Positions 21,891 to 44,946 of a DNA stretch of 64,000 nucleotides are shown here, piece by piece. The position numbers and the translations under genes are program-made. The stretch comes from Macrostomum lignano. Lineage: Eukaryota. A model generated the notes under the pieces. The model was given only the letters and a program-made list of their open reading frames with translations. It had not been told where the DNA came from and ran no database searches. Within the stretch, counting starts at the first letter, position 1. Each line of letters opens with the position of its first letter. The stretch spans positions 986,078 to 1,050,077 of the forward strand of contig NIVC01000089.1 of assembly GCA_002269645.1 (NCBI GenBank), in the 5' to 3' direction.

Positions 21891-22580
21891 TCAAAAAAAT
21901 GCTGCGCTGCCGTTTTCGTTATTTTCGTCTTGAGGCGTCGCCGGTGTCGCCATGCCGACGTTGTCAACGACGACAATTGAATTTGACGTCGCTGCCCCGC
22001 GGCACCGACAGGCGGAGAGCCGAGCAGCCGCTGAAGCCTCTGACGCCGCCGTCCCGGTGCCGCTGCCGCTGTTCGCGACGACCACGACACCTTCGTCCGT
22101 ATCAATGTCGGTGGTCCGACACGCCCCGCTGCCGCCACCGACGGAGCGTCGGATCCGCTGCATCGGCCAGGCCTCCTCGCCCAGGCTGGCGGCGGCTTCC
22201 CCCAGGACGAAGTTGTCGACATCGCCGAGGCAATAGTCAGCGGCTGCCGCGGCTGCCGATGCGTAGGGGGCGCCGCGTTGCCAAGTCCAACTGGCCGCCA
22301 TCTGCTGCTGCTGTTGCTGCTGCTGTTGAAGCGGGCGATAAAGCAGAGCAGGGGACTGCTGGCGCTGCTGGAGCTGGTGGTAATAAAAGTACTGATTCTG
22401 ATGCTGCTGGTTGTCCGTAGCAACTGGCTGGCTGAATCTGGGCGCGTACTCCTGCTGAGTTGGGCTGGTCATGGGTCGGGTGAACCACTGTTGCTCCAGG
22501 CTGTCCACAACGAACAGGTCGTGCTCGACGTCCGTGCCGACGGTGCGACTGCACTGCGGACCGCAGCCGGCCTGAACGCA
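21891..22580 (-). CDS. NRG: Neuregulin/vein-like EGFR ligand, last exon (cytoplasmic tail ending NGSAAFF*)
   Basis: Acceptor ccccgaactcttgccag| at 22581/22580 in phase 0 (an alternative in-frame acceptor lies 9 nt downstream); 229 open codons with high GC3. Confidence 0.85.
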   Translation of the reverse strand, partial: CVQAGCGPQCSRTVGTDVEHDLFVVDSLEQQWFTRPMTSPTQQEYAPRFSQPVATDNQQHQNQYFYYHQLQQRQQSPALLYRPLQQQQQQQQQMAASWTWQRGAPYASAAAAAADYCLGDVDNFVLGEAAASLGEEAWPMQRIRRSVGGGSGACRTTDIDTDEGVVVVANSGSGTGTAASEASAAARLSACRCRGAATSNSIVVVDNVGMATPATPQDENNENGSAAFF

Positions 22581-22619
22581 CTGGCAAGAGTTCGGGGAGG
22601 ATGAGGTGAGAACTGGGGA

Positions 22620-24428
22620 TGACAGGTGGAGTGGTAAGATACAGGTGGGGCCTGTCAGATACAGGTGGGCCTGTCAGAAACAGCTGGGGGCCTGTCAGAA
22701 ACAGGTGGGGTCTGTCAGAAACAGGTGGAGCCTGTCAGAAACAGGTGGGGCCTGTCAGAAACAGATGGAGCCTGTCAGAAACAGATGGAGCCTGTCAGAA
22801 AGAGCTGGAGCCTGTTAGAAACAGGTGGGGTCTGTCAGAAACAGGTGGGTCCTGTCAGAAACAGGTGGGGTCTGTCAGAAACAGGTGGAGCCTGTCAGAA
22901 ACAGGTGGGGCCTGTCAGAAACAGCTGGCGGCCTGTCAGAAACAGGTGGGGCCTGTCAGAAACAGCTGGAACCTGTCAGAAAGAGCTGGGGGTCTGTCAG
23001 AAACAGCTGGGGGCCTGTCAGAAACAGCTAGGGGCCTGTCAGAAACAGCTGGGGGCCTGTCAAAAAGAGCTGGAGCCTGTTAGAAACAGGTGGGGTCTGT
23101 CAGAAACAGGTGGGTCCTGTCAGAAACAGGTGGGGTCTGTCAGAAACAGGTGGAGCCTGTCAGAAACAGGTGGGGCCTGTCAGAAACAGCTGGGGGCCTG
23201 TCAGAAACAGGTGGGGGCCTGTCAGAAACAGGTGGGGCCTGTCAGAAACAGGTGGGGCCTGTCAGAAACAGATGGAGCCTGTCAGAAACAGGTGGAGCCT
23301 GTCAGAAAGAGCTGAAGCCTGTTAGAAACAGGTGGGGTCTGTCAGAAACAGGTGGGGCCTGTCAGATACAGGTGGGTCCTGTCAGAAACAGGTGGGGTCT
23401 GTCAGAAACAGGTGGGGCCTGTCAGATACAGGTGGGGCCTGTCAGAAACAGGTGGAGCCTGTCAGAAACAGGTGGGGCCTGTCAGAAACAGGTGGGTCCT
23501 GTCAGATATAGGTGGGGCCTGTCAGAAAGAGCTGGGGGTCTGTCAGAAACACCTGGGGGTCTGTCAGAAACAGTTGGGTCCTGTCAGAAACAGGTGGGTC
23601 CTGTCAGATACAGGTCGGGCCTGTCAGAAACAGGTGGAGCCTGTCAGAAACAGGTGGGGCCTGTCAGAAAGAGCTGGGGGTCTGTCAGAAACAGTTGGGG
23701 GTCTGTCAGAAACACCTGGAGGTCTGTCAGAAACAGGTGGGGCCTGTCAGATACAGGTGGGGCCTGTCAGATACAGGTGGGGCCTGTCAGATATAGGTGG
23801 GGCCTGTCAGAAAGAGCTGGGGGTCTGTCAGAAACACCTGGGGGTCTGTCAGAAAGAGCTGGAGCCTGTCAGAAACAGCTGGGGTCTGTCAGAAACAGTT
23901 GGGTCCTGTCAGAAACAGGTGGGTCCTGTCAGATACAGGTCGGGCCTGTCAGAAACAGGTGGAGCCTGTCAGAAACAGGTGGGTCCTGTCAGATACAGGT
24001 GGGGCCTGTTAGATACAGGTGGGGCCTGTCAGAAAGAGCTGGGGGTCTGTCAGAAACACCTGGGGGTCTGTCAGAAACACCTGGGGGTCTGTCAGAAACA
24101 GGTGGGGCCTGTCAGAAACAGGTGGGGCCTGTCAGAAAGAGCTGGGGGTCTGTCAGAAACACCTGGGGGTCTGTCAGAAACAGGTGGGGCCTGTCAGAAA
24201 GAGCTGGAGCCTGTCAGAAACAGCTGGGGTCTGTCAGAAACAGTTGGGTCCTGTCAGAAACAGGTGGGTCCTGTCAGATACAGGTCGGGCCTGTCAGAAA
24301 CAGGTGGAGCCTGTCAGAAACAGGTGGGTCCTGTCAGATACAGGTGGGGCCTGTTAGATACAGGTGGGGCCTGTCAGATACAGTTGGGTCCTGTCAGAAA
24401 CAGGTGGGTCCTGTCAGATACAGGTGGG
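22620..24428. repeat. ~20-bp intronic minisatellite (ctgtcagaaacaggtggggc), ~88 copies
   Basis: Fills nearly the whole intron. Confidence 0.97.
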
Positions 24429-24447
24429 CGCACGGGCAGCTCCTCAC

Positions 24448-24508
24448 CTGGGATCGCTCATTCTCCCGCTTGCTCCGTCGCCAGAAATCGAAATCGCGTC
24501 TTCGCTGC
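24448..24508 (-). CDS. NRG: Neuregulin-like exon: stop-transfer/juxtamembrane (RQRRRDFDFWRRSKRENERSQ)
   Basis: cttacag| acceptor, CAG|GTGAGG donor, 61 nt, phase 2 in and phase 0 out, matching both neighbours. Confidence 0.88.
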
Positions 24509-25000
24509 CTGTAAGATTGAGAAGGCGATTGCGAAGCGAAGTGGAGAATTTTCAAAGAAAAATGCTAATGCGCAAAATCACCTACTAAAAGTAGATTAGA
24601 GTAGTTAGTGCGAAAAATGCTTGTTGTCAAAACAAGGTAGAAATTCTCTACGTTGCAACGGCTTTTGAATAGTTAATTTGATGATGAAATCAAGCTACAG
24701 TTTCAACAACCTTCTCAATACTTTTTGTCAACAATTGCTTCTAAAAGCAGCAAAGTGGAATTCAGAGCCGTTTTTAAGTTATTCAAATTGACAACGAAAC
24801 ATTGTTTTTTATTTAAACAAAGCAGCCGTTTCAAGTTTTGAAGAGTTAGCTGCTAAGTGTAGTTCAGTGTTTTTCATAGCATAGGGTGTCCATGGAGTTG
24901 AAGGTACTGCTAGTTATATCGAAGGTATTCAGGATGCTAATTGATAATTATGAGGTAACTAATGATTTTTTGGTGACACTTACTAGTAAGAAGCACCTAC

Positions 25001-25100
25001 CTGGACAGGTACCAGGATATGAGCAGAATCAGCAGCAGCATGGTGAGCAGCAGCCCAATGCCGGTCACAGTCAGAATTCTGTCGGTTCGGTGAAAGCAGT
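25001..25100 (-). CDS. NRG: Neuregulin-like exon: transmembrane helix (CFHRTDRILTVTGIGLLLTMLLLILLISWYLS)
   Basis: ctccttccag| acceptor, CAG|GTAGGT donor, 100 nt, phase 1 in and phase 2 out. Confidence 0.93.
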
Positions 25101-43580: not shown

Positions 43581-44176
43581 AATGCTAAGCTCAAAAGCTG
43601 ATAAGAAGTTAACCACAATTGAGCTCACGTCCAACCCATCAAAAAATTTGCTCCAACTTGAGCCCTCTGCAGCCCCCCCCCCGGCTACCCAATTAGGCTT
43701 TATTGAAGTTATCTTAGGTCCCGCTGCAGCTGTGCAAGTTTGACAATTTAATCCGACCAGTCATTGCGTGCCAGCCAAGATTTAGGCGCAACTTCAGCGC
43801 CACTAAAATTGCCCCACTAATCCACATTAGCTCTATTAATCTCAGTCATAATCCACAAATTTCCCAACAAATTTTTGTTGCCCTTCCAGCTCGGAGGAAG
43901 ATGACTGAGCGCAAGTTTTTTGTTTTAGAATTCATTGAAAAAAGTACAGCATTGAGCGGCTGAGCACGGGCTCAACGGCGGCGTGTTGGCTCAGCACTTA
44001 ATTACTGCCGGCTTAGAGAGAGGGAGGGGGCAGGACAGGCCGCGACAGCTCAAGATGAAGCGTTGAGCCACTGGAGGAAGCTGGGAAATCCCTCCGGTTA
44101 ATGAACTTTCAGTTTCTGTCTGTCCGCTCTTGTCTTAATCGTTAAGCAGATCGGTTACTCTGTCAGCTTTCAGAAC

Positions 44177-44348
44177 CATTCGCAAGGCCTCTTATCGCTA
44201 ATTGCTACTTGGCGAGTTCTTCTATCGGGAAAATTCTCCCTAATTGCCTCCTGTTGCCGTTGCAGAGCTACATGGCGCTTCAGCACATCGATAAGGAGAT
44301 ACTGACCGATAATTTGCGCATTATGCGATTCGCCTCGGTTCTTTCTCG
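44177..44348 (-). CDS. Candidate exon 2 of the neuregulin-like gene ([24 protein letters not shown]...[11 protein letters not shown])
   Basis: gaccgcag| acceptor in phase 1, matching the signal-peptide exon; open frame; donor weak and ambiguous. Confidence 0.3.
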
Positions 44349-44354
44349 CTGCGG

Positions 44355-44606
44355 TCCGTCTGTGTCTGTCTGTCTGTGTCTGTCTGTCTGTGTCTGTCTG
44401 TCTGTGTCTGTCTGTCTGTCTGTCTGTGTGTGTCTGTCTGTCTGTGTCTGTCTGTCTGTCTGTGTGTCTGTCTGTCTGTCTGTCTGTCTGTCTGTCTGTC
44501 TGTCTGTCTGTCTGTCTGTCTGTCTGTCTGTCTGTCTGTCTGTCTGTCTGTCTGTCTGTCTGTCTGTCTGTCTGTCTGTGTGTCTGTCTGTCTGTCTGTC
44601 TGTCTG
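44355..44606. repeat. (GTCT)n/(GT)n microsatellite
   Basis: Read directly. Confidence 0.96.
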
Positions 44607-44825
44607 AGTTTTCGTTTAACTTCCTCATCACTTCATTCTCAATAATGCAAGCCCCAATCCAATCGCGGGGTGGGTAGTCAGTGATTTCCCAAGCTACTGG
44701 GGAAAGTCATCAATAAACCAGAACACTCAACTCTGTTGCCGAAGAATTCCCAGATGAGGGACACCTTGGTTTTGGGGCGCCTCAATTAGCGAGATCGCTA
44801 CTCGGGGGGAGGGGCAGGCACTCAC

Positions 44826-44946
44826 CCAGGACGTAGTTCACCTCCAGCTCGATTGCGTACCGCGATACCCCCTGAGGGGGCGGCGGCGGCGGCGACCTTC
44901 CGCCCGCCAGCCGGGCCAAAGCAGCGGCCAAAAGAATTGCCAGCAT
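44826..44946 (-). CDS. Probable first coding exon of the neuregulin-like gene: signal peptide (MLAILLAAALARLAGG-RSPPPPPPQGVSRYAIELEVNYVL)
   Basis: ATG at 44946, hydrophobic signal-like N-terminus, consensus G|GTGAGT donor in phase 1. The frame is also open for 86 codons upstream, without an ATG. Confidence 0.6.

Follow-up and report, generated by a model that had tools for sequence, protein, structure and literature searches.

The stretch of DNA analysed here (the window: 64,000 nucleotides of Macrostomum lignano, positions 986,078 to 1,050,077 of contig NIVC01000089.1 in GenBank assembly GCA_002269645.1) contains on its minus strand, between positions 21891 and 44946, a gene of nine exons which probably encodes an EGFR pro-ligand of the neuregulin (NRG) type, a type I membrane protein with an immunoglobulin (Ig) domain, an EGF module and a transmembrane (TM) segment. 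Extraction and joining of the exons gives an open reading frame (ORF) of 1566 nt, which codes for 521 amino acids plus the stop codon. An earlier note on this DNA had proposed eight core exons with GT/AG ends and matching phases, joined in a product of about 480 amino acids with an I-set Ig domain, a P/S/T-rich linker, an EGF module, a TM segment and a long tail. The coordinates of these exons proved exact, on the minus strand, with CAG acceptors and GT donors, and every part of the domain plan is present. The gene is composed as follows, all positions being those of the window:

Exon 1, 44826-44946, minus strand: ATG at 44946-44944, 121 nt, signal-peptide-like sequence MLAILLAAALARLAGG with a Pro run after it; donor G/GTGAGT, phase 1
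Candidate alternative first exon, 39615-39814, minus strand: inside intron 1, reading MKPELAPIQ...poly-Gly...VWSLLE; used by the UniProt protein A0A1I8GW14
Exon 2, 38858-39050, minus strand: first half of the I-set Ig domain (…KTLIVKCRARGKPNPKILWIKNGR…), identical to A0A1I8GW14
Exon 3, 34966-35081, minus strand: second half of the Ig domain (…LRISRILERDSGNYTCRAENNHGSIQKWVFVD)
Exon 4, 31481-31594, minus strand: P/S/T-rich linker, 114 nt, with CAG acceptor, GTGAGT donor and open frame
Exon 5, 30196-30274, minus strand: Cys1 to Cys4 of the EGF module (SCPAFYCLNNGTCSRQSVSSPPAC), ending within the Asn codon between Cys4 and Cys5
Exon 6, 26082-26173, minus strand: Cys5 to Cys6 of the EGF module (CSRPYWGARC) and most of the extracellular stalk (ERVDTGPFRNFSETCRGKVL)
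Exon 7, 25001-25100, minus strand: second stalk Cys, DRILTVTGIG motif and TM helix (residues 247-270)
Exon 8, 24448-24508, minus strand: basic cytoplasmic juxtamembrane stretch QRRRDFDFWRRSKRENERSQ, aligned to QRRKDWRVFRRKSK of NRG-2 from the polyclad Prostheceraeus vittatus
Exon 9, 21891-22580, minus strand: 229 amino acids of cytoplasmic tail with an RTVGTDVEHD motif and poly-Q and poly-A runs; TGA at 21891-21893
First AATAAA past the stop codon, 21302-21307, minus strand: consensus match only

The eight core exons joined (1445 nt) keep a single frame of 480 amino acids which is open up to the TGA. In the nine-exon model all eight acceptors are CAG, all eight donors follow GTRxG, and the phases are compatible throughout; the donors of the first seven core exons are GTGAGT, GTAAGT, GTGAGT, GTAAGT, GTGAGC, GTAGGT and GTGAGG, and a pyrimidine-rich tract precedes every CAG acceptor of the eight core exons. 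Neither a stop codon nor a frameshift interrupts the 1566 nt, which are scattered across 23 kb, and 16 of the 16 splice sites are canonical and strong. Since the Ig domain becomes complete only after exons 2 and 3 have been joined, the six-cysteine EGF only after the joining of exons 5 and 6, and the whole chain is collinear with a transcript-derived flatworm protein, the exon chain is more than a product of chance.

Position 44946, the upper limit of the range, is the A of an ATG, from which exon 1 translates as MLAILLAAALARLAGGRSPPPPPPQGVSRYAIELEVNYVL. This exon ends in phase 1, the phase needed by exon 2, which extends the core product to the ORF of 521 amino acids. Seven segments of the minus strand between 39,051 and 64,000 combine an ATG with a phase-1 end and a GTRAG donor, and among these seven candidates the N-terminus of 44826-44946 is by far the most hydrophobic. 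The internal exon at 39615-39814 lacks a signal peptide, has a weak donor (G/GTTTGT, phase 1) and is 94% identical to residues 1-65 of A0A1I8GW14; it may be either a genuine alternative first exon or a gene-prediction artefact. Exon 4, with phase 1-1, may be a cassette exon, since a transcript that skips it would stay in frame. On the other side of the gene, a (TTGA)n array of 514 bp (21363-21876, minus strand) starts about 15 nt past the stop codon and lies within the 3' untranslated region if the AATAAA at 21302-21307 is the poly(A) signal.

According to Pfam, the 480-residue product contains one Ig domain, N-terminal to the EGF, with matches above the curated cut-offs (Ig_3, 1.3e-15; I-set, 9.4e-15) and both Ig cysteines intact. 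The EGF module shows all six cysteines (C185, C190, C196, C207, C209 and C218), and its sequence agrees exactly with the string quoted in the earlier note. Because the generic Pfam EGF model stayed below threshold, the 61-residue EGF region was compared with the full set of 177,635 distinct PDB sequences, and the assignment of the module rests on the six cysteines and on the ligand matches of this search. The top 15 of 15 matches are EGFR ligands or, in one case, an EGF-like peptide of ant venom: the best is an EGF/TGF-alpha chimera (2.9e-5), followed by betacellulin (4.8e-5), with which the window protein has YxGARCERVD in common, the ant-venom peptide, EGF, TGF-alpha and Spitz. The EGF modules of Notch and urokinase (uPA) rank below all ligand matches. 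In the PDB alignments the counterparts of EGF residues Tyr13, Leu15, Gly18, Tyr37, Gly39 and Arg41 are retained.

Three features were proposed by Stein and Staros (2006) as criteria for ErbB ligands: Cys4 and Cys5 are separated by a splice site, the EGF module is near the TM segment, and a conserved Arg stands before Cys6 (PMC1618406). All three are found in the window gene. The Asn codon of the C-N-C sequence is interrupted (AA/T) by the intron that separates exons 5 and 6, and this bears out the use that the earlier note had made of a Cys4/Cys5 intron as a mark of EGFR/ErbB ligands; the gap between Cys6 and the TM segment is 28 residues; and an Arg precedes Cys6 in WGARC, aligned to DRC of EGF and to ARC of TGF-alpha and betacellulin.

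The 28-residue stalk, from Cys6 (218) to the start of the TM segment (247), contains two conserved cysteines. Residues 247-270 form the sole strong hydrophobic segment (Kyte-Doolittle 19-residue mean of 2.68) and are followed by SRQRRRD. The motif at the TM entry, R[VI]LT[IV]xGI, is common to the window protein, human NRG1 and amphioxus NRG. The tail has 251 residues, 229 of them in the last exon, and is of low complexity. An AlphaFold2 model of A0A1I8GW14, computed with no alignment, gave a mean pLDDT of 36.7; the TM helix alone is confident (pLDDT >80) and the rest of the model is meaningless.

NRG-type ligands were defined by Barberan et al. (2016) as proteins with an EGF module, an I-set Ig domain and a TM segment (PMC4914847). 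The window protein has a single six-cysteine EGF, an I-set Ig domain N-terminal to it and a TM segment after it, and it groups with NRG-type ligands, so that the neuregulin/vein class assigned in the earlier note from the combination of Ig and EGF fits this definition, with the qualification that NRG1 is less close in sequence to the EGF itself than EGF, TGF-alpha and betacellulin are. The label 'neuregulin' rests on the architecture and on the collinear similarity to NRG-type ligands.

This similarity was evaluated against a panel of ten ligand sequences, taken from the supplement PDF of the same survey, whose text carries noise from optical character recognition, and the BLAST E-values refer to this panel. 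Within it, the best match is P. vittatus NRG-2 (108 bits), collinear over residues 37-411 and a reciprocal best hit. The oyster, Schistosoma, Vein and human NRG1 sequences are collinear through the Ig domain, the EGF and (Vein excepted) the TM segment, with 44-57 bits. Comparison by segments with P. vittatus NRG-2, using 300 shuffles, gave z-scores of 20 for the Ig domain, 22 for the stalk, TM and juxtamembrane region, 4.5 for the tail and 3.3 for the EGF. The exon 4 linker showed no significant similarity to this protein in the segment shuffle test. Neither did exon 1 to its N-terminus (z 0.5), and the homology suggested there by eye (IE.L.EV..YV) was dropped.

The P. vittatus sequence is derived from a transcript and has a single Ig and a single EGF; it starts about 20 residues before the Ig domain and has no long N-terminal domain. 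Both proteins share the IxKWVF end of the Ig domain, the C-x4-C first EGF loop, two stalk cysteines, the TM entry DR[IT]LT..GIG, which resembles RVLTITGI of human NRG1, the juxtamembrane motif ISW[YF]..RQRR[KR]D and RTVGxDV in the tail. They differ in that overall identity is about 28%, the tails are otherwise unalignable, and the P. vittatus sequence is without a visible signal peptide; furthermore, it shows GLHC where the window protein has GARC, with the Arg before Cys6, and loops of x4/x9 instead of x5/x10. From these comparisons the window gene is the putative M. lignano counterpart (ortholog) of P. vittatus NRG-2.

The 2016 survey counted for M. lignano one NRG-like and one EGF-like ligand against eight EGFRs (PMC4914847). 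The possibility that the window gene is the 'M. lignano NRG' published there was considered and rejected: that sequence, from the same species or genus and with the same Ig-EGF-TM plan, has no tblastn match in the window, and its similarity to the window protein reaches only 33 bits and is confined to the Ig domain. In addition, it differs by an N-terminal domain of about 180 residues like that of Lineus NRG, its best match; human NRG2 looks similar by eye.

Likenesses extend to better known ligands. NRG1 and NRG2 (Ig isoforms) and Drosophila Vein share with the window protein the order Ig, spacer, EGF, the Cys4/Cys5 intron and GxRC before Cys6, and in NRG1 only a short stalk lies before the TM segment, whose entry is likewise of the RVLTITGI type. 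By contrast, Vein is secreted and lacks a TM segment, and the window protein has a shorter first EGF loop and no match to the Pfam Neuregulin cytoplasmic domain. The C. elegans proteins SISS-1 and IGEG-2, reported as EGFR ligands, have a similar small Ig, EGF and TM plan with a Cys4/Cys5 intron, a likeness at the level of plan; SISS-1 differs in having no signal peptide and a short tail.

Among 5.8 billion clustered proteins the sole close relative is A0A1I8GW14 of M. lignano, a protein of 274 residues annotated as 'Ig-like domain-containing protein'. Beyond its identity in exon 2, it is 93.5-97.5% identical in exons 3, 6 and 7 and identical over the 22 residues of exon 5 that it covers; the differences between the two copies include R/Q, L/V and V/I exchanges. 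Junctions 2/3, 5/6 and 6/7 are present in it as well, which, with the collinearity to the transcript-derived P. vittatus NRG-2, lends indirect support to the predicted splicing. A0A1I8GW14 differs in four respects: it starts from the internal exon at 39615-39814; it translates part of the exon 4 linker in a different frame and rejoins the EGF past Cys1, and consequently has only five EGF cysteines; it ends directly after the TM segment, without juxtamembrane stretch or tail; and it is not named as a ligand. Its source DNA would have to contain one C fewer in the run CTGCCCAGC, as judged from the two protein sequences, and the missing C would be either an assembly error or a true frameshift. 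Within the window sequence, the EGF is obtained only with the splicing proposed in the earlier note. A0A1I8GW14 comes from the same gene or from a very recent duplicate. A profile search with the alignment of the window and P. vittatus NRG-2 proteins from EGF to tail found A0A1I8GW14 again and no other match. According to the earlier note, fast-evolving EGFR ligands are often missed by annotation, which holds for this gene in that the public entry is truncated, mis-spliced and not named as a ligand, but not for the middle part of the protein, which A0A1I8GW14 covers.

A more distant relative was found in a metaclust protein of 442 residues, P0002, in which residues 394-442 correspond to an Ig half-exon with 71% identity to exon 2 (window 38905-39051); this half-exon points to at least one more diverged paralogue in some Macrostomum-like genome. 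The part of P0002 upstream of it resembles translated non-coding sequence.

Taken as an EGFR pro-ligand, the protein would begin with a signal-like stretch and continue with an I-set Ig domain, a P/S/T spacer, a ligand-type EGF, a stalk, a TM segment, a basic juxtamembrane motif and a low-complexity tail. By analogy with NRG1, Vein and SISS-1, the precursor would be a type I protein of the plasma membrane that exposes Ig and EGF on the outside of the cell. Its EGF module may bind one of the eight M. lignano EGFRs, either while tethered or after a protease cut in the stalk, the Ig domain could shape the range of the ligand by anchoring it to matrix or heparan sulfate, and the conserved juxtamembrane and tail motifs might serve sorting or back-signalling.

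Several observations weigh against this assignment. The score of the EGF region with the generic Pfam EGF model (11.5 bits, E 0.38) is sub-threshold. NRG1 is a weak match to the EGF region in the PDB search (E 0.16-0.39). Controls of the EGF type or from non-ligands are absent from the ligand panel. The 480-residue product has, at E up to 1, no match to the Pfam Neuregulin cytoplasmic domain (PF02158); the intracellular region of neuregulins is named as the neuregulin domain in PMC4914847. The contiguous tail exon found 0 matches among 1.84 billion representative proteins, and homology backs exon 1, the exon 4 linker and the tail little or not at all. Exon 1, the junctions of exons 4 and 9, and expression are predictions from the genomic sequence, and binding to a receptor is something we infer by analogy.

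Further points on this side would suit an Ig-EGF membrane protein that signals outside the EGFR pathway, in adhesion or recognition, with an EGF that is structural or binds another partner. The canonical spacing of EGFR ligands is CX7CX4-5CX10-13CXCX8C; the window protein has CX4CX5CX10CXCX8C, in which the first loop (x4 instead of x7) is the sole departure and is like that of generic EGF repeats. The x4 loop is also present in NRG-1 and NRG-2 of P. vittatus. The counterpart of EGF Leu47 is a Thr in the PDB alignments, the two additional stalk cysteines could limit shedding, and mucins, meprins and IMPG2, which are not proven ligands, also show the intron and the proximity of the EGF to the TM segment (PMC1618406). 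We nevertheless consider such an adhesion or recognition protein unlikely, because all 15 top places in the PDB search were taken by EGFR ligands (including the one venom peptide) and not by the EGFs of Notch, Delta or clotting factors, the GxRC motif and other contact residues are retained, the protein groups with NRG-type ligands, and C. elegans proteins of the same Ig, EGF and TM plan are reported as EGFR ligands. Moreover, it has one Ig and one EGF, as in ligands, and not arrays of the adhesion type. The earlier note had named further EGF or Ig modules as a sign against a ligand, and none was found at the DNA level: tblastn of the model returned only its own exons in the window, and a Pfam scan of 31 kb of the minus strand (19-50 kb, stop-to-stop fragments of at least 30 residues outside tandem repeats) matched the two Ig half-exons only, with no extra domain.

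The same scan, together with the stop codon and the repeat and AATAAA after it, bears on whether the exons belong to a larger gene with several more domains that extends beyond the scanned interval or the window. In favour of such a gene, exon 1 is without homology backing, the window ends 19 kb upstream of it, and the same strand has a zf-MYND exon at 58398-58868. Yet exon 1 is unique in combining an ATG, a hydrophobic start and a strong in-phase donor, and the transcript-derived P. vittatus NRG-2 has the same plan of a single Ig and a single EGF and starts about 20 residues before the Ig domain; a larger gene is therefore hardly to be expected. It is also very unlikely that the locus is a silent or decaying duplicate whose functional copy may lie elsewhere in a genome rich in duplicated genes. 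The near-identical A0A1I8GW14, with its different reading of the linker and EGF start, and the Ig half-exon of P0002, which speaks for further paralogues, are in keeping with duplication, but the ORF in the window, with neither stop nor frameshift, its canonical splice sites and the intact cysteines of EGF and Ig argue against decay, and the anomaly, the absence of Cys1, sits in the database copy and not in the window. The interpretation as a gene for an NRG-type EGFR pro-ligand is thus retained as probable.

A broader proposal is offered tentatively and is itself rather doubtful. The window gene may form, with NRG-2 and NRG-1 of P. vittatus, a separate subfamily of 'short' NRG-type ligands that branched early in flatworms. 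Its members would be mainly tethered or reverse-signalling through the juxtamembrane region, not shed, and planarians and parasitic flatworms would lack the subfamily or have it in a form too diverged to be recognised. The marks of the subfamily may be the lack of an N-terminal domain, the x4 loop, a disulfide-closed stalk and the conserved TM segment with ISW[YF]..RQRR[KR]D.

According to Tandem Repeats Finder, tandem repeats occupy 58% of the gene span, 0-96% of single introns and 46% of the 64-kb window, in agreement with the satellite-filled introns described in the earlier note. The arrays in introns have periods of 4, 14, 17, 20, 21, 24, 26 and 36. These minisatellite-filled introns are genomic context and stand outside the mechanism, but they explain the broken automatic annotation, and, in conjunction with the single-base frame problem, the truncated database entry without EGF Cys1. 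Across the window there are many distinct minisatellites with a period of 20 or 21 bp and six long tetranucleotide arrays (TCAA, TCTA, GTCT, CACT, TAGA and TGTC). Some 21-mers of the arrays at 32300-34615 and 38268-38789, in neighbouring introns, look related by eye, in opposite orientation. These repeats and the other features of the window are:

Tandem repeats, example arrays: 20000-20666, 22637-24428, 28821-29850, 32300-34615, 38268-38789, 42492-43582 and 45296-45809
GGL domain (G-protein gamma subunit) ORF fragment, 7407-7706, minus strand: Pfam E 2.2e-12, ending in CAAX-like CLLL
398-residue open frame, 15724-16917, plus strand: in a GC-rich block, Gln/His-rich start and one hydrophobic stretch, no Pfam match
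RNase H end and zf-RVT ORF, 17530-18057, minus strand: both below the Pfam cut-offs
zf-MYND ORF, 58398-58868, minus strand: Pfam E 2.5e-6, Ala/Arg/Glu-rich stretch after it, 13 kb upstream of exon 1

Because the GGL fragment ends in a CAAX-like CLLL, 7407-7706 is probably the last coding exon of a neighbouring gene, and the zf-MYND ORF is presumably a separate gene. The ORF at 17530-18057 is probably a fragment of a non-LTR (long terminal repeat) retroelement, in a block of 64% GC at 14-18 kb. The frame at 15724-16917 may be non-coding, with long ORFs present there in several frames.

Signalling by NRG and EGFR controls neoblast behaviour in planarians, acoels and tapeworms, and M. lignano serves as a transgenic model in which stem cells and regeneration of flatworms are studied. 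Flatworm ligands of the NRG type had already been described (Smed-nrg-1; EmNRG, which was paired with its receptor EmER1 by membrane yeast two-hybrid; NRG-1 and NRG-2 of P. vittatus), so the gene adds a member to an established kind; no new principle is involved, and the result will not surprise a specialist. What is new is a probable M. lignano ligand which is not listed in the 2016 survey and is present in public protein databases only as a truncated and mis-spliced entry. The result is a useful re-annotation for work on Macrostomum regeneration: the complete predicted coding sequence can be used for in situ hybridization, RNA interference and receptor-pairing work, and a second NRG-type ligand narrows the gap between receptors and ligands in M. 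lignano, for which eight EGFRs stood against two ligands in 2016.

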